Of a DNA stretch of 64,000 nucleotides, positions 14,916 through 55,049 are shown one piece after another. A program made the translations under genes and the position numbers. Location: the sequence record LR588166.1. The stretch is one strand, 5' to 3'. The stretch's first letter is position 1, and each line of letters begins with the position of its first letter. The notes beneath the pieces are model-generated. The model saw only the letters and a program-made list of their open reading frames with translations, searched no databases and had not been told where the DNA came from.

Positions 14916-15116
14916 ATGACGTTAGTAGTATTGTACATAATAATCCAATCTATTTTAGTAGGTATACTGCATCATTTAGCTATAAGAAATCTTGTATTAA
15001 AAGAAAATTGGTTATGTGTATTTATACTATCGACTATATTATGGATATTATGGCCTATAGGTTATCTAATATCGTGTATATACGCAATGTATATTAAATA
15101 TAAAAACCCTGTATAG
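14916..15116 (+). CDS. Small membrane protein
   Basis: Two hydrophobic segments. Confidence 0.6.
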   Translation: MTLVVLYIIIQSILVGILHHLAIRNLVLKENWLCVFILSTILWILWPIGYLISCIYAMYIKYKNPV

Positions 15117-15132
15117 TCTATACAGGGTTTTT
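15102..15132. terminator. Bidirectional terminator hairpin
   Basis: AAAAACCCTGTATAG / CTATACAGGGTTTTT. Confidence 0.75.
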
Positions 15133-15192
15133 ATATACCCAGTAAATTATAAAATCAGATAAATAATACGATGGCTATTACTGGAGATATAT

Positions 15193-27373: not shown

Positions 27374-28325
27374 TTGTTTTTCTTTTTCCTTTGCCTGTAG
27401 ATAAAATATACATAAAATATTCTTCGTTATTTTTTAATTCAGGATACATCTTAAACATTTCTGACCAACTAGTTTTTGTTAATTTTTCGAGATGCTTAGG
27501 TACTATAGGCTTAAAGGTTGTTGTATATTTCTTAGCAAATGCCACTAAGTTAGCACCTGTAAACGGAGTGCCGTGTACAAATTCTTTAGAAGAAAGTTCA
27601 TCCGATATATCGTTTTCGTTAATTTCAAAAAAGTTAACAATATTGTACACATCAGATTTAGAAATGTACTTATTTTTTATTATATCGTTTTTTATTGTAT
27701 CTAAAGTAAATATTTGCTTAAGATCGTTTACTGTATCTAAAGCATATTTAGGACACAATTTATTAGACTTATTAAAGTCAGATACTGTATGTTTAATTGC
27801 TGGCGGCAAATGGTAATAATACGAAAATGAATTATAAGTAAATACGAGATTTGCCATACTACACAGACGTTTAATATGTTTATCTATTACACTGGCATAT
27901 AATTTATCATAATTTTTATATGTTTTTAAATTATGTAAATCAGACACATCTATTTTATTTAAACACAGCATCAATGGAATACAGTCACTGTATCTAGCTG
28001 CCACATTATTTACAATAGGTTTACTGTTGAATTTAGATTTAAACTCATTAATTATTTTTTCATTAAACAAAATAGAAATGTCTTTTATAAGAAATTCATG
28101 CAATGCTCTGCATAACCCATCAAACTGTGTACTATTTTTAAATGCATAAAGACTAGTAGATAAACTATCATTGTTAAAAAACGATGATAATGCATGGTGT
28201 GCATCCGATGAATGCGCTAGCGGTATGTCATATCTAATAGAACTTTCTAATATATATTCTATATCGTTTCGTTCTACCGAATTCCAGTCAATTTGCGATA
28301 ACATTTGTGATACTGATTTTTTCAT
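27366..28325 (-). CDS. Hypothetical protein
   Basis: 319-aa ORF in a coupled operon. Confidence 0.7.
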   Translation of the reverse strand: MKKSVSQMLSQIDWNSVERNDIEYILESSIRYDIPLAHSSDAHHALSSFFNNDSLSTSLYAFKNSTQFDGLCRALHEFLIKDISILFNEKIINEFKSKFNSKPIVNNVAARYSDCIPLMLCLNKIDVSDLHNLKTYKNYDKLYASVIDKHIKRLCSMANLVFTYNSFSYYYHLPPAIKHTVSDFNKSNKLCPKYALDTVNDLKQIFTLDTIKNDIIKNKYISKSDVYNIVNFFEINENDISDELSSKEFVHGTPFTGANLVAFAKKYTTTFKPIVPKHLEKLTKTSWSEMFKMYPELKNNEEYFMYILSTGKGKRKTNE

Positions 28326-29218
28326 TAGTTTCGGGGACCTTTAAGTTTTGCTAGTACATGTTGTTCTGACCCAGCCAAATGAGGGAAGATCTTTATAAGT
28401 TTGTTCCAGTACGAATACGGCAAAAAATCGAGATTTATATAATCTAAATATTTTATAGAATTACTATGCAACCTATTCCTCGAAAGTATAGTCAATATAT
28501 GTCGTCCTGCTATATAAGACCAATCTATATTTTTAAGAAATGTAATACAACTGTCAGTAGACATTGTCTGACCATTTGCTTTATGCATATAGAATAGCGA
28601 AGACATCCTTTCAAAAAGAAACCAGTGATATTGTTTATTTTTAGAAATAGTATCAAACCCTACAAATTTTACATATTCTTCAAAAACAGAATATCTTTTA
28701 CTACAAAAAAAATTAAATACTGTTTTATCCAACAAAACGTTATGTCGTTTTAATTCTTTTAAAATAAGTCTTACTATGTTTAAATCAGGTAAAGATTGTA
28801 TGGTACACAATTGCGTTATTATATCTTTAGATAATGCTTTTCTCGGTTTTAAATTCTTTAAAACAACATAAAATAATTTATGACATGTTATAGGAACTCT
28901 CATAGGAAACATTGAATTTGAAAATTTTCCAATACATTGTCTAACAAGATATAAATCTTCTTTACTTATAGATCTGTTATATTCACTAACAGAAGACGAA
29001 TAATTACTTGATATAAAGTTTATTAATTTGGGACTTTTAATTTCCATAAGAACATTCAATACAGTAGCATTGAACGGTATATATTCAACATCGATAGAAT
29101 TACAGACTGCAATTAGTGCATCTTTAGCCGAATTATTAGCAATTGTTATTTCTTTATTTTTTCTAAATTTAATAAAATATTCTAATTCGCTTAAAGCTTT
29201 AATATAGCTAATATCCAT
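28325..29218 (-). CDS. Hypothetical protein
   Basis: 297-aa ORF in a coupled operon. Confidence 0.7.
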   Translation of the reverse strand: MDISYIKALSELEYFIKFRKNKEITIANNSAKDALIAVCNSIDVEYIPFNATVLNVLMEIKSPKLINFISSNYSSSVSEYNRSISKEDLYLVRQCIGKFSNSMFPMRVPITCHKLFYVVLKNLKPRKALSKDIITQLCTIQSLPDLNIVRLILKELKRHNVLLDKTVFNFFCSKRYSVFEEYVKFVGFDTISKNKQYHWFLFERMSSLFYMHKANGQTMSTDSCITFLKNIDWSYIAGRHILTILSRNRLHSNSIKYLDYINLDFLPYSYWNKLIKIFPHLAGSEQHVLAKLKGPRN

Positions 29219-29307
29219 ACGTATACCGTAAAAATTTTTACCATACTATAAAATATGTATATTCAATAGTCAACTGTGTTTGGTAACAAAATGTGGTAAT
29301 TAGGCAC

Positions 29308-29336
29308 TTGACATTGGTATTGTCTTTTAGTAAACT
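29308..29336 (+). promoter_or_regulatory. Sigma70-type promoter with no ORF downstream
   Basis: TTGACA-17 nt-TAAACT. Confidence 0.7.
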
Positions 29337-29341
29337 GTGCG

Positions 29342-29972
29342 CTTGCGTAAGAAATGTATATACGATAGTGCTATATGTATATACAGACAAGTGGCTCTGT
29401 TCCATCATTGGATATTGGTAGTAGAAACTATCCCCATCGTGCTGTTATTGTAGTTCCGATAGTGTCGGGTTAACGTTTTAACAGTTATTTAAATTATGAT
29501 TTTGGGTGCCACAGAGATTGTACTTACTAAAAGGACTTAGTAAGAACCGCATATAATCTCGAAACTTGTGTAGGATGTTGGTCTAACCACGGCATAGAAT
29601 ATATGCCTCAACTACTACACGGAAAGGATGATGCTCTGGTTGAAACAGAGTTTCTATAAATCTTTCAGTATAGATTCCGTATGACTGAAAGTTGAAACAC
29701 CAACATCAATGGACTATAGTTTTTGTTAGTGTGGCTATAGTTTATTCCGGCATTGAAAGTATATGCAGTGATGCGAGACAGTAAGCATTAGTAGCAACTG
29801 TATATATGAGTAAGAGGATGCGTTTACAATGAGGAATTACCTATCGGTGCCCGCCTCAGGGATTGCACTTCCCAACGTACACTAAACTTCGTACCATACC
29901 GAAACATACGTTTCTGTTATTACGATTTCCTTCCCAAACGGGGAGGAAATCTTCTCCGCCCGAATATCATAA
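29342..29972 (+). ncRNA. Candidate large structured non-coding RNA (~630 nt), family unassigned
   Basis: ORF-free and more GC-rich than its flanks. More than 12 nested helices by eye, a long-range helix 29494-29506/29959-29972, and G-U wobbles that favour the + strand. Confidence 0.6.
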
Positions 29973-30013
29973 GATCAAAAACATTAATAATTAATATATA
30001 AAATTCGTTTAAT

Positions 30014-30067
30014 TAGTTATTAAGTATATGAGTTGTAGTTTACGAAAACGAATATACTTAATAACTA
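30014..30067. repeat. Perfect 16-bp inverted repeat
   Basis: TAGTTATTAAGTATAT (30014-30029) / ATATACTTAATAACTA (30052-30067). Confidence 0.9.
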
Positions 30068-30183
30068 CCAGTGAAGCTTGCTTCGCTGTTTAAAATTGCA
30101 ATTTGTATTTTCAATTTTATATTTTGAAATGTGTTTTTGAAAATCAATCTATAAAATATAATTTTAAATATTATTTTTAAATG

Positions 30184-30270
30184 TCATTTTGTGATTTTAA
30201 TTTAAAATAATATTTCATGATTTAAAATGGAAATATATTAAACAATATCATTTTGTGATTTTAATTTAAA
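30184..30270. repeat. 23-bp direct repeat in a very AT-rich zone
   Basis: TCATTTTGTGATTTTAATTTAAA at 30184 and 30248. Confidence 0.85.
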
Positions 30271-31039
30271 CAATTTCATATAAAACTATTTTGTCTATTT
30301 CTTTTATAATCTTAAAGTCATTAAAAACCCTACATTTGTAGGGTTTTTATTTGATTATATGGTATATAGTATTCGGTTTTAGACATTCAGATTATTATAA
30401 TTAATAATATCTGTATGATAACTATATTTTATAGAAATACATTTACTAATTACATTTGCCAATAAATGGTTATTTTCTTTATATTTAATACGTCTCGGGA
30501 GTATATAGCAAATATTATAAATCGAGACACATAATATTTGTGTCTATATTTTTTTTAGTTTCATTACTCTACATAATCGATTATTAATGTATACAGTTAT
30601 ATACGCTATATTGTAATAACAAACCAAATTATATAGAGAATATACATTAAACTCTGTTTTGTGTTAAATCGACACTACATATATTATTATGCATTGATAC
30701 TTGCCGTATATAAAACTAATTAGTTATTATGTGCTTTAAAAGAATTCCATTATAATTAGTTTTCTGTGTCATATTCAAATGATGAAAAACATAATTCTTT
30801 CATCTATTTTTATTAAATGTTATTCAAGATTTATAATATAATTTTATAATGTTTGCAATTTATGACACAAGCTATTTTAATAGAATTATACTATTCAAAG
30901 TTTTGACTTATTTTGTGTGTAAACGACAAAAATAGGCATATATATAAAAAGCACACCTGTTTCCTGTATGAAACAAAATAGTATTTTATTAAAAATAGTG
31001 TATAGTAGTAAAAAACATCATTAATCATGCACGCAATTT

Positions 31040-31261
31040 ATGGCAAACGTAATTAAAGAACTTCATCCTATTAAAGGATATTGCATAGTTGTGCGTCATC
31101 CAGGCGATACTAGATTTAGCTGGGTATCGCTAGATAATCAATATATTTTGGTAGACAATCCAGTATTTTTAAATGATGAATTTGACAATTGTAAAAACGA
31201 ATGGCCGGATGCTGAAATAAAAATAGTAGAAGTATATATTGTCCCGGAGAAGGTGTTATGA
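31040..31261 (+). CDS. Hypothetical protein (paralog of the next ORF)
   Basis: YCIVV...SWV...IKIVEVYIVPE. Confidence 0.7.
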   Translation: MANVIKELHPIKGYCIVVRHPGDTRFSWVSLDNQYILVDNPVFLNDEFDNCKNEWPDAEIKIVEVYIVPEKVL

Positions 31262-31476
31262 ATGCTATATCTAAAATATCTCCGTCTAAATGTTATACTG
31301 TCGTAGTTACAGATAATAATTGGAAATCATGCACATGGGTAAATTATCATGATTCTCCGGTTGTAGAATACGATATTTCTAAAATATCACCTATATTGGA
31401 ATCTTGTAAGAAAAAGTTTGGCAATAGTAATGTAAGGGTAATGGAAATATATTTAGTACCGGAAAACTTTTTATGA
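31258..31476 (+). CDS. Hypothetical protein (paralog of the previous ORF)
   Basis: YTVVV...TWV...VRVMEIYLVPE. Confidence 0.7.
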   Translation: MNAISKISPSKCYTVVVTDNNWKSCTWVNYHDSPVVEYDISKISPILESCKKKFGNSNVRVMEIYLVPENFL

Positions 31477-31985: not shown

Positions 31986-33140
31986 ATGAGTCAGATGTAC
32001 GTAACTATCACTAATGGAATGTACCGTAACCAGCAAGTAAACGGCACATTCCTTTTACTCGAAGATGTGAAAGTTACTGGGTCGGGAAAACGAGTTATTA
32101 ACGTATTAGGTGCATTGCCGGAATGGTCTCAACATAAATGTAGAGTTACACTCGGTAATGACGCAACAGTACAGTATTCGAACGAACAAGGAGAGGTTTT
32201 AGATTTGCCTAATGTTATACGTCCTTTTGTGGGCGAAAATAATAATAATGTTCCTGCATCTAGTCGCGGTACAGTGTATGAAGGCACCGCAGTAGAAATT
32301 GACTACGAAAAACAATACCAGCAACTAGAATCCGAAAACGATGCAATGAATCGTATCAAACGGACTTTTGAGATTGTAAATGAACTAACAGAGGCTGCCG
32401 CGGCAGGCGAAATCCGTTCTATGATCATCTCCGGTCCTCCCGGAATCGGAAAAAGCTTCGGCGTAGAAGAAACACTAAACAGGTGTTTCTTGTTGGATAA
32501 AATTAAAGATAATAAAGAACCGTTTGAGATCGTAAAGGGCGCTGCAAGTGCAATTGGTGTTTACCAAAAGCTTTACGAATTTAAAGATAAAGGTAAAATC
32601 CTTATTTTCGATGATTGCGACCGCGTACTATTTGACGAAGATAGTCTAAATCTCCTTAAAGGTGCATTAGATACTACTAAGCGTAGAACTATTTACTGGC
32701 TTAGTGAGTCCCGCGTTTTAAAAGAAAATGATATTCCACCTAAATTCGATTTCGAAGGTAGTGTAATTTTCCTTACTAACCTTAACTTCGAGGATACAAA
32801 GTCCCGAATCGGAAGGCACCTAGAAGCAATTATGTCCCGGTGTCATTATTTAGACATGGAAATTAGTAGTACGAGAGATCAGATCCTTCGTATTAAACAA
32901 GTTGTGCGCGACGGGATGCTTAGTAAATATGAATTTAATAACGGAGAAGATGAAGAAATCCTAGAATATATTATCGATAATCAGAATGATCTGCGAGAAC
33001 TTAGCTTGCGTATGGTAATTAAAATTGCCGATCTGATTAAATTCAAAAAAGATGGTTGGCGAGAATATGCAGAGACAACTGTACTGAAACGGAATGCAAA
33101 ATTCCGGCGGCTGTATAACGAAAAGTACAGTGATATTTAA
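31986..33140 (+). CDS. P-loop (AAA-like) ATPase
   Basis: ISGPPGIGKS and ILIFDDCD. Confidence 0.88.
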   Translation: MSQMYVTITNGMYRNQQVNGTFLLLEDVKVTGSGKRVINVLGALPEWSQHKCRVTLGNDATVQYSNEQGEVLDLPNVIRPFVGENNNNVPASSRGTVYEGTAVEIDYEKQYQQLESENDAMNRIKRTFEIVNELTEAAAAGEIRSMIISGPPGIGKSFGVEETLNRCFLLDKIKDNKEPFEIVKGAASAIGVYQKLYEFKDKGKILIFDDCDRVLFDEDSLNLLKGALDTTKRRTIYWLSESRVLKENDIPPKFDFEGSVIFLTNLNFEDTKSRIGRHLEAIMSRCHYLDMEISSTRDQILRIKQVVRDGMLSKYEFNNGEDEEILEYIIDNQNDLRELSLRMVIKIADLIKFKKDGWREYAETTVLKRNAKFRRLYNEKYSDI

Positions 33141-50829: not shown

Positions 50830-50906
50830 CCCTCGGTAGCTCAGTTGGTTAGAGCGCGCGACTCATAATCGCTAGGTCACTGGTTCGAATCCAGTTCGAG
50901 GGACCA
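50830..50906 (+). tRNA. tRNA with CAT anticodon, Ile2 (lysidine)-like, copy 1
   Basis: Cloverleaf with CCA. Anticodon arm GCGA-CTCATAA-TCGC resembles bacterial tRNA-Ile2. Elongator Met is not excluded. Confidence 0.9.
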
Positions 50907-50928
50907 ATTTTAAGATGTTGTGCTTTTA

Positions 50929-51013
50929 GCCCGAGTGGTGAAATTGGTAGACACAGGAGACTTAAAATCTCCCGCTTCGCAGCGTACCGGTTCGAGTCCG
51001 GTCTCGGGTACCA
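50929..51013 (+). tRNA. tRNA-Leu(TAA), copy 1
   Basis: GGAGA-CTTAAAA-TCTCC, long variable arm, CCA. Confidence 0.95.
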
Positions 51014-51063
51014 AACAAAAGATATAAATACTTAACAAGATAGGAAACTATTCTAAAATTAAA

Positions 51064-51139
51064 TGGCTAGTAGCTCAGTTGGTAGAGCAAATGACTGTTA
51101 ATCATTGGGTCGTAGGTTCGAGTCCTACCTAGCCAGCCA
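51064..51139 (+). tRNA. tRNA-Asn(GTT)
   Basis: AATGA-CTGTTAA-TCATT, G73, CCA. Confidence 0.95.
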
Positions 51140-51165
51140 ATTACACTTTGTTGTATATTCAATAT

Positions 51166-51241
<76 letters not shown>

Positions 51242-51310
51242 ATTTTAAATAACAGTTGTATCTAAAGAGATACAATAGTCTAAATAAAATATTCATATAA
51301 TGTTTCAAAC

Positions 51311-51387
51311 GGGACTTTAGCTCAGTTGGTTAGAGCGCGCGACTCATAATCGCTAGGTCACTGGTTCGAATCCAGTAAGTCCCACCA
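51311..51387 (+). tRNA. tRNA with CAT anticodon, Ile2 (lysidine)-like, copy 2
   Basis: Identical to copy 1 except the acceptor stem (GGGACTT/AAGTCCC), CCA. Confidence 0.9.
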
Positions 51388-51437
51388 ATTTTTATATACA
51401 AATCAAACTATACTTAAACTATATAATGAATGAATAT

Positions 51438-51522
51438 GCCCGGTTGGTGAAATCGGTAGACACAGGAGACTTAAAATCTCCCGACGAAAGTCGTGCCAGT
51501 TCGAGTCTGGCACCGGGCACCA
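51438..51522 (+). tRNA. tRNA-Leu(TAA), copy 2
   Basis: Same anticodon arm as copy 1, CCA. Confidence 0.95.
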
Positions 51523-52388
51523 AACCCCTAAAAAAGGAACATATTATAGTATGTTCCTTTTTTATTATGATATTTTTATTATGAATGAAATAATGCATAT
51601 ATCTGCCAACACATACGTAATAGAATATCGCGTATTAAACAAGTTAGTAGTTACTATAAAAGATAATAGATCTTTCACATTATGGATACATTTTGATATC
51701 GGTGCATTTTCTATAGCATGGAAATACAATGCAATATAGAATTAAAAAATGAAATACATTATTAATTTACAATACTCAACAGAAGTAATATACATGCCTT
51801 GTTTCAACATATTATCGCTATGCGATAATAGATCTGTTACTATCCTTTCTATTACTATGATATTTAAGATAAGATATTATTTGCATCCGATGTACCGTTA
51901 TATTCTATAATACATAATATTTTTATTGTAACAAATACCAGAAGTGCTTAGATAATATATAGCAATTCTGTTTATTATCGATATTATGGTATACTTAGTA
52001 TTCTTATTAACCTTATTACATAGAATAAAGAATGGAAAAAATTTTAACTATTTCGCATAAAACATTGATATGTGAACTGTCGTTATTAAAATGGTCGAAA
52101 TCCATAGTTTGTGTTTATTCTGGCGAAATAGTATGGTATGCTCGGCTAGATAAGAACTGTTATGTTGTACGGATAAGATGATGATAATGAACTGTATTTT
52201 TTCCTATTCGTATTATTTAGAACGCATCGTATGTCATGCAAAAATCTACAAAGGGTTTGTAGTCAGTAAAAATACTTTTTGTGAGAAATCCGTAATAGCT
52301 TTATACTTAATAAATAGTGGTAGTTATTTTCATAAATGTTACGTCGATCATTACTTAATTGTATAGATATATATTTTAATAAAAATAG

Positions 52389-52417
52389 TTGACCGAACAA
52401 ACAAAACAGTATATAAT
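52389..52417 (+). promoter_or_regulatory. Sigma70-type promoter for tRNA-Arg
   Basis: TTGACC-17 nt-TATAAT. Confidence 0.7.
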
Positions 52418-52468
52418 GTTACGCATACAAAGCATTATTACAAAGCTATCATTAGTTGCACAAGATAT

Positions 52469-52545
52469 GCGCTCGTAGCTCAGCTGGATAGAGCATCCGC
52501 CTTCTAAGCGGATGGTCGGGGGTTCGAATCCCTCCGGGCGCGCCA
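52469..52545 (+). tRNA. tRNA-Arg(TCT)
   Basis: TCCGC-CTTCTAA-GCGGA, CCA. Confidence 0.95.
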
Positions 52546-53084
52546 ATTTTAAAGAGTGTTGTGTTATGCAAACAATAAGATTTGACATAAGACTTCTTCG
52601 TTATAGTATGAAACAAGGTTTCTGTTGTATAGGTAAAGATATATTTGAAGTGTGCAGAAAAACTCGGATCAGTCCAGGTCAGCTAAACTTACGAAAAAAT
52701 TATATAGGACGAGTATTAATCGGAATTGATTCGAACTATAATCTGCACAATACCTGTTTAGTAGGCTGGACTCGGTATAAAAATATTATAGTATAAAAAT
52801 TTATATTAATAATATGAATAGATGCAAAGAACATCTACAATACAGAACAATCAAAAAGCATACATCGACTTGTAGGAAATGCAAAGAGTTATCGTTACAA
52901 ATAAAATTATTTTGGCTTCAACAACAAGCATTCAGTATTAGAACCGATACTAGCGGAATATACATATTCGATATTAAATATAATTCTATTTACGTATACT
53001 CTGTAGCTTGGTATAATACAGAATTATACGGTAAAGGGAAAATAATTTTAGAATAAACATGTATATATAAGAGTACCTCAAATA

Positions 53085-53417
53085 ATGAATAATTATTCTA
53101 ATGATACAGATATTCTAAAATGGATAAAGCGTAACAATAGAAAAAATGCACGTCTAATTTCATATATAGACGGAATATATAATATTGTTTATTTTGATGG
53201 CGGAAAAGCAAGAGTTGGCATAGTAAAAGACAATATGCACTGCAGATACGGAATACATAGTCGTGGATCTATGTATTCGAAAGATATAATGAGCCTGTGG
53301 CAATCTAGTACAGGTTCGTGTTCGCCTGATGATGTAAAGATTATGCAAGATTATCTAGACGATAAATGTATGCTTCCGGAATTTGATTTTTCTCAGATTA
53401 AAAATTTAAAATGGTAA
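53085..53417 (+). CDS. Hypothetical protein
   Basis: 110-aa ORF. Confidence 0.7.
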   Translation: MNNYSNDTDILKWIKRNNRKNARLISYIDGIYNIVYFDGGKARVGIVKDNMHCRYGIHSRGSMYSKDIMSLWQSSTGSCSPDDVKIMQDYLDDKCMLPEFDFSQIKNLKW

Positions 53418-53440
53418 ATAATATAACAATATAGTTTTAT

Positions 53441-53517
53441 CGCAGGGTATGCAAGAGGTCTAAGCAGAAAGGCTCATAACCTTTTTATCGTGGGTTCGAA
53501 TCCCACCCCTGCAACCA
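53441..53517 (+). tRNA. Initiator-type tRNA-fMet(CAT)
   Basis: C1:A72 mismatch, AAAGG-CTCATAA-CCTTT, CCA. Confidence 0.88.
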
Positions 53518-53526
53518 GTTTTATAT

Positions 53527-53603
53527 CTAGGCATAGCTCAAGTAGGTAGAGCACTTGCTTTGGGAGCAAGAGGTTGGGGATTCGAGGTCTCCTGCCTAGA
53601 CCA
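53527..53603 (+). tRNA. tRNA-Pro(TGG)
   Basis: CTTGC-TTTGGGA-GCAAG, CCA. Confidence 0.9.
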
Positions 53604-53612
53604 ATTTACTAT

Positions 53613-53685
53613 GCAGTCCTAGCTCAATTGGTAGAGCACTGTCCTTCCAAGTCAGATGTTACGGGTTCGAGTCCCGTGGGCTGCT
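53613..53685 (+). tRNA. tRNA-Gly(TCC), no encoded CCA
   Basis: CTGTC-CTTCCAA-GTCAG with one T:T mismatch, ends T-CAA. Confidence 0.85.
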
Positions 53686-54430
53686 CAATATTCTAATATA
53701 ATTGATTGGTATATCTAATCGATGATTCATGTAGTGGATAAATATGGAAGTATAGTTATACCATCTAATATAACGGTGCTGGAAATACAGGCATACACAA
53801 CAGAGTTATTGTATGTAAGAAAATCTCATTGTTTATGTTTATACATTCCTAATATAGGAAATTATGCTTTATGGTTTTTAGACAGATAGGATAAAAATAT
53901 AAATTGTTCTGTTTAAGGAACCAACATTAAATGGCAGGTTGCATATTTAGGCTCGATTTGTCTATTTTTCGTGAAAATGTATATAGTATTTCTAGGTTGT
54001 CTTATACAAAATCTATATGTGTTTCAATAAAAACTAAACCGACAAGCAATAGAAGACAATTAGAAATATATGTTGTAGATAAAACAACTGATTTTTTAAT
54101 TGCATGCAAATATTTTTAGCTTATCTATTATTTTATAAATTGACTTACCTTTAAATAACCATTATATATCTGTTATAATAACTATTCTAAATAGAAATAA
54201 AACCATAAATACACATAATAACGGTGTGGATTTATGGAAAACATATTTAGGATATCTATTAATGCTAACGAAGGTATTATACGAATATCCCCTACTTACT
54301 TTTTTAATGGTGTTTTTTATTCAAAGCATTTGAATATTTTTATAATAGATCCCGACGGATATTTAATAAGAAAAATATATACTTGTAGTACATTCTTATG
54401 ATGATTTCTTTTAAATATACAAAATAGCAT

Positions 54431-54459
54431 TTGACACAAGTATAATTATTTCGTATAAT
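54431..54459 (+). promoter_or_regulatory. Consensus sigma70 promoter
   Basis: TTGACA-17 nt-TATAAT. Confidence 0.8.
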
Positions 54460-54490
54460 AAGTGTATAAAATAACAAAAGAGAATTTTAA

Positions 54491-54850
54491 ATGATTTCCA
54501 AAATTCAAATTGTATACGGAATATATCTTCCTACTGCCGATGCAAAAATTATATACGAAGACTTGGAATACGAATCTAATAAAATAAATAAAAATATTAG
54601 ATTATTTGCAAATGATGCATATTTAGAAGATAAGATTTTAGAAAATAAGGAATTCGAAGATAATCCCTATGTTCCGCACTTTTATGGTATCTTTTGTAAA
54701 GAATTCGATAATGACCAAAGTGCATACTTATATAATGTTCCTAAATCTTTTATAGATGAATATAATAATGTAGCTCCAGCTATTTTAGCTAGACTTGGTT
54801 ATTTAGATAGAGTTGCAGGAAAACAACATTGTAGAATAATTTACGAATAG
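54491..54850 (+). CDS. Hypothetical protein
   Basis: ORF downstream of the consensus promoter. Confidence 0.75.
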   Translation: MISKIQIVYGIYLPTADAKIIYEDLEYESNKINKNIRLFANDAYLEDKILENKEFEDNPYVPHFYGIFCKEFDNDQSAYLYNVPKSFIDEYNNVAPAILARLGYLDRVAGKQHCRIIYE

Positions 54851-54864
54851 AATTAACTAGTTTT

Positions 54865-54954
54865 GGAGAGGTGATAGAGTCTGGTTTATTATACTAGTCT
54901 TGAAAACTAGCGGATCGAAAGGTCCCGTGGGTTCGAATCCCACCCTCTCCGCCA
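54865..54954 (+). tRNA. tRNA-Ser(TGA)
   Basis: CTAGT-CTTGAAA-ACTAG, long variable arm, G73, CCA. Confidence 0.93.
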
Positions 54955-54959
54955 AATAT

Positions 54960-55049
54960 AGATACTTGACCGAGTGGCTTAAGGTGCTTCCCTGCTAAGG
55001 AAGTGAGTTTGAAAAAGCTCCGTAGGTTCGAATCCTACAGTATCTGCCA
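54960..55049 (+). tRNA. tRNA-Ser(GCT)
   Basis: CTTCC-CTGCTAA-GGAAG, long variable arm, G73, CCA. Confidence 0.93.

Follow-up and report, generated by a model that had tools for sequence, protein, structure and literature searches.

The DNA analysed here is a window of 64,000 nucleotides (nt) that is 100% identical to Pseudomonas phage vB_PaeM_MIJ3 (LR588166.1; a window position equals the LR588166.1 position minus 124000) and that carries, at 29343-29973 on the plus strand, the core of a structured non-coding RNA. The RNA lies at the junction of an 11-gene minus strand block on its left and plus strand genes on its right. The window shares 98.4-99.3% identity with nine other phages (PA5oct, phi30-2, phi30-3, Deifobo, Paride, Cassandra, Ettore, Callisto, and PAC2) of Wroclawvirus, the single genus of the family Arenbergviridae. 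The stretch at 29342-29972, which the initial annotation had flagged as a candidate phage non-coding RNA, was 99.0% identical over 631 nt to ncRNA004 of PA5oct, on the same strand and with the same flanking genes. In the PA5oct record (MK797984.1), ncRNA004 is entered as a 'putative lncRNA' at 246116..246734 (+), which corresponds to window positions 29355-29973, with the locus tag EST35_0353 and the note 'Annotation based on RNA-Seq data'; nothing is annotated at this locus in the MIJ3 record. Judged by its sequence, the MIJ3 stretch is the orthologue of PA5oct ncRNA004, and the transcript is not new, having been described in 2020 and entered in GenBank. Lood et al. (2020; PMC7318152, Table 1) reported ncRNA004 from PA5oct RNA-seq with coordinates and read shares only and described it as having no known promoter, and our search of the later literature returned nothing further on ncRNA004. 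New here are the assignment of a promoter, a map of helices with their probabilities, and strand-specific fold statistics with a genomic background, together with evidence of purifying selection, the rejection of small open reading frames (ORFs), and the link to a conserved AT-rich block and a terminator.

A promoter scan placed a sigma70-type promoter, TTGACA-17-TAAACT, at 29308-29336 (+), in agreement with the initial annotation. It matches 10 of the 12 consensus positions, has a predicted transcription start at approximately 29341-29345, and precedes the RNA-seq 5' end mapped from PA5oct by about 12-19 nt. Both hexamers were invariant in the 10 genomes, and two spacer bases differed in Cassandra. 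PA5oct infection is sensitive to rifampicin and dependent on the host RNA polymerase, and its promoters contain TTGAC and TATAATA boxes (PMC7318152). Promoter-like sites were not enriched in the AT-rich region (26 found, 20.5 +/- 5 expected). The promoter at 29308-29336 is credible because of its position near the RNA-seq 5' end, its invariant hexamers, and the host polymerase dependence. Back to back with it stands a divergent sigma70-like promoter, TTGACT-17-TATAGT (29245-29273, minus strand), which, according to the promoter scan and the position of the ORF, would serve the gene for a 297-amino acid (aa) protein at 28325-29218. Not one column was variable from 29222 to 29313 among the 10 genomes. 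A 16-nt motif, ATGTATATWCRATAGT, occurs at 29255-29270, over the leftward promoter, and again 99 nt away at 29354-29369, approximately at +12 of the RNA; these are its only two exact copies in the window, and the extended match covers 22 nt at 82% identity. The motif was not found genome-wide, and the pair may represent a shared operator or a chance match.

The published read counts indicate a low and steady level of transcript. The share of ncRNA004 among phage reads was 0.08, 0.03, and 0.02% at 5, 15, and 25 min (early, middle, and late), respectively, and phage reads made up 21, 69, and 92-93% of all PA5oct-infection reads at these times (PMC7318152); by arithmetic, ncRNA004 accounted for about 0.02% of all reads at each time. 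Close to the annotated 3' end lies a 12-bp (base pair) hairpin, GAUUUCCUUCCC-AAAC-GGGGAGGAAAUC (29924-29951, plus strand; pair probability 0.99), which the scan did not call as a terminator. This hairpin is followed by UUCUCC instead of a U-run and is therefore more likely to be a protective 3' stem than a canonical terminator. The first canonical intrinsic terminator downstream of the RNA promoter is at 30322-30349.

The plus strand of the RNA had a minimum free energy (MFE) of -184.5 kcal/mol, compared with -150.5 +/- 6.7 kcal/mol for dinucleotide shuffles (z = -5.1), whereas the minus strand folded less stably (-154.1 kcal/mol; z between -1.6 and -3.2). Background tiles of 300 nt over the window gave a mean z of -1.2 +/- 1.3, and those within the RNA gave -2.2 to -5.5; the RNA region is an outlier but not unique, as other tiles of the window reach z <= -3.5. 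The predicted fold contains 194 pairs, 27 of them G-U, which makes it specific to the plus strand, as the initial annotation had argued from the wobbles. Its description of the stretch as relatively GC-rich was also borne out: the GC content in 200-nt windows of the RNA is 0.36-0.415, whereas the non-coding DNA on either side has 0.125-0.25 (0.245 immediately upstream, 0.125-0.22 downstream). The raised GC content of the RNA in an AT-rich genome parallels that of the phage transfer RNAs (tRNAs).

All of the nested helices proposed earlier exist in the sequence, and most are part of the MFE fold; for local hairpins, the ensemble probability is 0.66-1.00. The 5' hairpin UGUAUAUAC/GUAUAUACA (29355-29385; mean pair probability 0.72) has a core, GUAUAUAC, that is its own reverse complement, and related copies of this core at 29759-29768 and 29798-29807 provide alternative long-range pairings; the consensus fold pairs 29355-29363 with 29759-29767 instead of forming the 5' hairpin. 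It is followed by a three-tier hairpin (GCUGUUA/UAACAGU, UGU/ACG, and UCCGAU/GUCGGG; 29441-29485) with probabilities of 0.96, 0.77, and 0.95, respectively, in which every pair is invariant, and by a 17-bp extended hairpin, GAGAUUGUA+CUUACUAA / UUAGUAAG+UAUAAUCUC, with the loop AAGGAC (29514-29560; 0.98-0.99). Farther downstream on the same strand, GUGUAG/CUACAC encloses GGCAUA/UAUGCC (29568-29620; 0.66 at the base and 1.00 at the tip), and GCUCUG/CAGAGU (29633-29651; 0.98) precedes UUUCAGU/ACUGAAA (29663-29690; 0.76), where position 29684 is A or G opposite U and switches between U-A and U-G among the genomes. A 14-bp hairpin, AAUGGACUAUAGUU/GGCUAUAGUUUAUU (29708-29746; 0.95), has undergone two one-sided A/G changes with pairing kept. 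The branched 3' domain at 29819-29879 consists of UGCGUU/AACGUA enclosing UGAGG/CCUCA (with UACC/GGUG within) and GGGA/UCCC (0.77-0.97), and the A>G changes at 29858 and 29874 keep their pairs as U-G. The long-range helix 29494-29506/29959-29972, which the initial annotation had drawn as closing about 480 nt, is a genuine 13-bp complementarity; however, its ensemble probability is only about 0.24 and it competes with 29499-29510/29749-29760, which makes it a minority conformer. Five Logan contigs from several independent samples end at window positions 29384-29436, in the 5' part of the RNA. These breaks adjoin palindromic GTATATAC repeats and the variable sites at 29404-29418 and are probably an assembly effect of repeats or mixed strains.

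We aligned 4.9 kb from the ten Wroclawvirus genomes. In the RNA, 18 of 631 columns were variable (2.9%), compared with 3.8%, 2.1%, and 7.8% at codon positions 1, 2, and 3 of six flanking genes (position 3: 70/901) and 15.8% in the intergenic stretch 30350-31039. The RNA was significantly less variable than the third codon positions (Fisher P = 3e-5) and than the intergenic stretch (P = 7e-17), and it is as constrained as codon positions 1 and 2 of the neighboring genes. When the variable columns were placed on the consensus plus strand fold, 8 were unpaired, 9 were A/G opposite U, and 1 was disruptive (T>G at 29569). Thus 17 of the 18 variants were compatible with this fold, whereas 10 of 18 were compatible with the same helices read on the minus strand. 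When the same base changes were relocated at random, at least 17 were compatible in about 1% of trials (P ~0.01). To avoid circularity, the variants were also set against a fold predicted from the MIJ3 sequence by itself, and 16 of the 18 agreed with it (P = 0.034). The variants added 9 extra pair types at the true register, as opposed to 0-3 with the partners slid. A search of Logan and ENA assemblies yielded one metagenomic genome and a few contigs within the cluster, with only two new variants in the RNA, both from that genome: A>G at 29572, which is kept as G-U, and T>G at 29926. With every copy at 98.7% identity or more, the shuffle control carried no information, and the RNA has no homologue outside Wroclawvirus that could provide covariation. 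Overall, the pattern of variants is suggestive of, but not conclusive for, a selected RNA fold.

These results make it very probable that the locus encodes a functional non-coding RNA. The core at 29343-29973 combines identity to an RNA-seq-annotated feature, fold z-scores below background, low variability, variants that fit the plus strand fold, and non-coding sequence; the proposal of a phage non-coding RNA of about 630 nt on the plus strand, with a sigma70-type promoter of its own, agrees with the PA5oct RNA-seq annotation, the selective constraint, and the fold statistics. Of the explanations considered, the best overall, to which we assign about an even chance, is a stand-alone structured RNA that is made by the host polymerase, is orthologous to ncRNA004, and acts as RNA. 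This reading follows from the strand-specific fold, the RNA-type pattern of variants, and the discrete RNA-seq feature in PA5oct. The host RNA polymerase would start at the promoter at 29308-29336, one half of the divergent pair, and transcribe rightwards to give an RNA of approximately 620-630 nt, the stable part of which would end near 29973, just past the 12-bp hairpin. The selected product would be the RNA itself, with a multi-branched fold of at least 10 stable hairpins, present at a low and roughly constant level from early infection on. Its most likely role would be that of a scaffold or decoy acting in trans for a phage or host protein, although we hold this role tentatively and put it somewhat short of even. 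The exact start, the formation of the 3' end, and the whole of the trans mechanism are what we infer rather than observe.

Several results weigh against a stand-alone, trans-acting RNA. The constraint does not stop at the end of the RNA but persists through an AT-rich block at 29974-30321 (4.0% variable), and since this block of approximately 350 bp is also conserved, the functional unit may be larger or act in cis. The coverage of ncRNA004 per base was about 0.1-0.4 times the phage average (arithmetic from PMC7318152), a level of expression hard to reconcile with a scaffold of the GOLLD or ROOL kind that would work stoichiometrically. The promoter/terminator scan called no canonical terminator where the 3' end is annotated (~29973). 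With regard to the fold, the energy-based variant test (MFE version) was marginal (P = 0.07), the T>G change at 29569 disrupts a pair in two genomes, and the T>G change at 29926 in the metagenomic scaffold produces a mismatch in the 12-bp 3' hairpin. No pair showed a compensatory double change among the known copies, all of which are at least 98.7% identical; for the same reasons, the wording 'ornate' and 'new class' in the initial annotation is not established. Finally, the RNA has no long complementarity to the rest of the window, and no partner, target, or motif for it was found in Rfam or by window complementarity. It is unlikely that this RNA founds a new kind of large structured RNA in phages, whether one that works through its three-dimensional fold, as a self-assembling particle, a decoy against host defence or RNA-binding proteins, or a ribozyme, or one that defines a replication origin as a folded pre-primer like that of ColE1.

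The main rival explanation is an origin transcript acting in cis, in which the promoter and the RNA serve a replication origin in the AT-rich block. The RNA would form a persistent hybrid and then prime the leading strand, like the folded pre-primer ColE1 RNA II, or transcription would open the AT-rich element, as it does at T4 oriE, oriF, and oriG. The block (29974-30321) has a GC content of 0.125-0.20 and is 4.0% variable, compared with 15.8% in the next intergenic stretch. A hairpin with 26-nt arms occupies 30014-30067 of the block, and a 23-nt sequence, TCATTTTGTGATTTTAATTTAAA, is perfectly repeated in direct orientation at 30184-30206 and 30248-30270, 64 nt apart, with no such repeat expected by chance; the fold z-scores of the block are -3.5 to -5.9 on both strands. 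The block may belong to a longer transcript as its 3' tail, or it may act as DNA, for instance as a candidate region for unwinding or binding. An origin would suit the position of the locus at a switch of transcription strand, with minus strand genes to the left and plus strand genes to the right, the early-type sigma70 promoter pointing into a conserved block of very low GC content with direct and inverted repeats, and the annotated 3' end of the RNA (29973) exactly at the GC/AT boundary. A low, constant abundance is also better suited to a primer than to a scaffold. For T4, the origins oriE, oriF, and oriG occur at points of transcriptional divergence (PMC3016281), which the layout at this locus resembles, and PA5oct ncRNA003 likewise lies at a divergence point. 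Two kilobases downstream of the RNA, the gene at 31986-33140 encodes an AAA ATPase with weak similarity to DnaC-like helicase loaders and to clamp loaders and with homologues in T4-like phages.

Other observations fit such an origin less well. In T4, the unwinding element directly follows the promoter, and formation of the R-loop is said to be independent of specific sequence (PMC3016281), so that a T4-like scheme would leave a constrained and folded RNA of 630 nt, which is also the gap between promoter and AT-rich block, unexplained unless the mechanism were ColE1-like. C is abundant in the final 200 nt of the RNA, as is T in the AT-rich tail when read on the RNA-like strand, and both would be unfavorable for a stable RNA-DNA hybrid. 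A consensus scan found no promoter-like site on the minus strand within 29343-29973 for an antisense RNA of the ColE1 RNA I type, the 23-nt repeat is present in two copies only, and the GC skew just tracks gene orientation and gives no independent signal. On balance, we consider an origin transcript unlikely, though it is the foremost competitor of the stand-alone RNA. The 23-nt repeats were also considered as a mini-array resembling clustered regularly interspaced short palindromic repeats (CRISPR), which was rejected because they gave only a chance-level match to CRISPR-DR39 (E = 4.1); to our knowledge, they are unlike the CRISPR repeats of P. aeruginosa.

If the conserved unit acted as DNA, in the form of an architectural site or one bound by proteins, for example as the regulatory region of two divergent operons, the RNA would be a by-product. 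Conservation is indeed unbroken from the divergent promoters to the terminator (29219-30321), AT-rich DNA included, one copy of ATGTATATWCRATAGT overlaps the leftward promoter and the other lies at +12 in the RNA, and expression is low. However, the variants fit the plus strand fold in 17 of 18 cases but the minus strand in only 10 and are mostly A/G opposite U, and such switches matter only in RNA and therefore count against an element acting at the DNA level. The 27 G-U pairs, which render the fold strand-specific, point the same way, and neither a raised GC content nor z = -5.1 would be expected of an array of binding sites. We regard this explanation as improbable.

Of similarly low probability is the suggestion that the RNA is the 5' portion of a transcript of approximately 1 kb ending at 30322-30349, or a long leader for the plus strand genes from 31040, with the 630-nt species as a nuclease-resistant product. 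No canonical terminator is present at 29951-29973, the first being that at 30322-30349, the intervening block is conserved, and AT-rich tails would easily be lost from RNA-seq coverage. The authors of the PA5oct study, however, placed the 3' end at 246734, which equals window 29973. A leader role for the genes from 31040 is unlikely because a strong terminator and 690 nt of hypervariable DNA with small minus strand ORFs intervene, and the longer transcript ending at 30349 is itself a variant of the stand-alone RNA that we prefer.

A decayed gene or a gene for a small protein is very improbable. Five records (Deifobo, Paride, Cassandra, Ettore, and PAC2) annotate hypothetical coding sequences of 30-50 aa inside the stretch, and its GC content resembles that of coding DNA. 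Nevertheless, the longest plus strand ORF is 43 aa, and the longest minus strand ORF, of 56 aa, overlaps only the first 66 nt. Each of the six frames contains 9-19 stops of all three kinds, which also excludes a recoded gene and leaves the stretch ORF-free, as first described. The small ORFs had no PHROG matches, their natural variants are almost all non-synonymous, and one of them is broken by a stop in nine of the ten genomes; the small annotated coding sequences are probably over-predictions. A pseudogene would be expected to drift almost neutrally, whereas this stretch varies less than third codon positions do. Stops, variants, and conservation led us to reject coding or decayed coding sequence.

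Least credible of all is a divergent member of a described family (ROOL, GOLLD, OLE, HEARO, group I/II intron, RNase P RNA, transfer-messenger RNA (tmRNA), or 6S): the RNA resembles ROOL in its size and in being phage-borne, but neither cmscan (Rfam 15, 4227 models, E<=10) nor ARAGORN matched it to any family, it is located away from tRNAs, and it interrupts no gene. With permissive filters, cmscan returned nothing in 29100-30400 except terminator-like matches at 30201-30383, and the models of ROOL, GOLLD, OLE, HEARO, and raiA had no match there at the gathering score or at E<=10. ARAGORN reported no tmRNA or tRNA at the locus. Signatures of tmRNA, RNase P RNA, and group I/II introns had been judged absent at the outset, and the Rfam and ARAGORN results and the complete flanking ORFs bear this out. 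A group I/II intron was rejected on the lack of an Rfam match and on flanking ORFs that are complete and on opposite strands; tmRNA, tRNA-like RNA, RNase P RNA, and 6S were rejected on the lack of an ARAGORN or covariance-model match. We also rejected a sponge for RsmA/CsrA, since a hand count gave about 10 GGA motifs, compared with about 8 expected.

Searches for relatives returned the genus alone. A blastn search (word size 11) of 50,697 phage records matched only 11 Wroclawvirus records, at 98.7% identity or more, the other matches being chance matches of 25-35 nt. The plasmid search gave no match to the RNA, and scans of IMG/VR with two flanking proteins and two RNA motifs gave no relative. 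A metagenome scan with the GC-rich 18-mer CCTATCGGTGCCCGCCTC, a poorly chosen motif, gave 36 loci, all of them chance matches on contigs with a GC content of 52-68%. Among 5.8 billion proteins, the 297-aa protein encoded next to the RNA proved to be an orphan, and the RNA resembles none of PA5oct ncRNA001-003 (best E = 0.05 over 12 nt). The homologues in related jumbo phages that the initial annotation had looked to were thus not found, as copies or as syntenic relatives, outside Wroclawvirus in phage records, plasmids, IMG/VR, metagenome contigs, or proteins. The '3 places per record' in the BLAST output were considered as paralogues and rejected, as they are self inverted repeats.

Several features of the surroundings were observed in the course of this work. 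The terminator at 30322-30349, AAAAACCCUAC-NNNN-GUAGGGUUUUU, was called by the terminator scan as a bidirectional intrinsic terminator, with weak Rfam matches to terminator parts only. Its 11-bp stem, AAAAACCCTAC/GTAGGGTTTTT, is invariant in the ten genomes; all four loop bases vary (ATTT, GTTT, AAAT, AGAC, and AAAC), which indicates that neutral sites have diverged appreciably within the genus, and the loop serves as a built-in gauge of the neutral substitution rate. Immediately after the terminator, 30350-31039 is hypervariable with several indels, in sharp contrast to the conserved kilobase on its left. The adjacent ORFs of 73 and 72 aa at 31040-31476 both end in ...E(V/I)Y(I/L)VPE... and had no Pfam or PHROG match; by their sequences, they look like tandem paralogues. 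In PA5oct and many T4-like phages, the product of 31986-33140 is labelled 'thioredoxin'; the protein is a P-loop AAA ATPase (Pfam AAA_16; phrog_1250), and the label looks like a propagated mis-annotation. Farther to the left, a perfect 19-bp hairpin, ATATAAAAACCCTGTATAG/CTATACAGGGTTTTTATAT, at 15098-15136, where the surrounding 631-nt window has z of about -7 on both strands, is probably another bidirectional terminator. Twelve tRNA genes (+) are clustered at 50830-55046, about 21 kb downstream of the RNA.

PA5oct-like phages, including MIJ3 and Paride, are therapy candidates and model jumbo phages, most of whose genome has no assigned function. Just four non-coding transcripts have been reported from the group, among them that of the ncRNA004 locus. 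At present, the RNA counts as one that was annotated before and that occurs in a single genus; given its constraint and strand-specific fold, it offers a defined object for deletion and for probing of its structure. Should it prove to be an ornate RNA acting in trans, the range of such RNAs would come to include Pseudomonas jumbo phages. If it were an origin transcript, it would offer a first handle on the start of replication in these phages, and if it were a ColE1-like pre-primer, no earlier origin RNA of its type would be known from a jumbo phage, in this case a T4-related one.

Like ROOL and GOLLD, which are found in Firmicutes and phages, the MIJ3 RNA is large (ROOL and GOLLD, ~0.6-0.8 kb), ORF-free, highly folded, and carried by a phage. 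It differs from them in matching no covariance model, in its proteobacterial host, in its low abundance, and in a fold without covariation support. ROOL and GOLLD are often adjacent to tRNA genes, whereas the nearest tRNA gene to the MIJ3 RNA starts at 50830, about 20.9 kb downstream. The comparison made in the initial annotation holds as an analogy between large folded phage RNAs but does not extend to an Rfam match, a place beside tRNAs, or strong expression. In its length and dependence on folding, the RNA recalls ColE1 RNA II; it differs in that the scan revealed no promoter for an antisense regulator and in a 3'-end composition unfavorable for a persistent hybrid. With T4 oriE, oriF, and oriG, it would share a host-type promoter and a non-coding transcript running into an A+T-rich element, and like them it sits at a point of divergence (PMC3016281), although the T4 unwinding element follows the promoter immediately and the AT-rich block of MIJ3 lies 630 nt on. 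Among the other non-coding RNAs of PA5oct, ncRNA001 and ncRNA002 differ in being highly expressed and in lying in the terminal repeat (PMC7318152). The end of ncRNA003 is given as 103668 in GenBank and as 103368 in the table of the paper. As annotated in GenBank (103065..103668), ncRNA003 is GC-richer over about 250 nt at its 5' side and AT-rich thereafter, a layout similar to that of ncRNA004. Reported by the same RNA-seq study, annotated at about 600 nt, weakly expressed, and situated at a divergent junction, ncRNA003 is the counterpart within PA5oct itself that ncRNA004 resembles.

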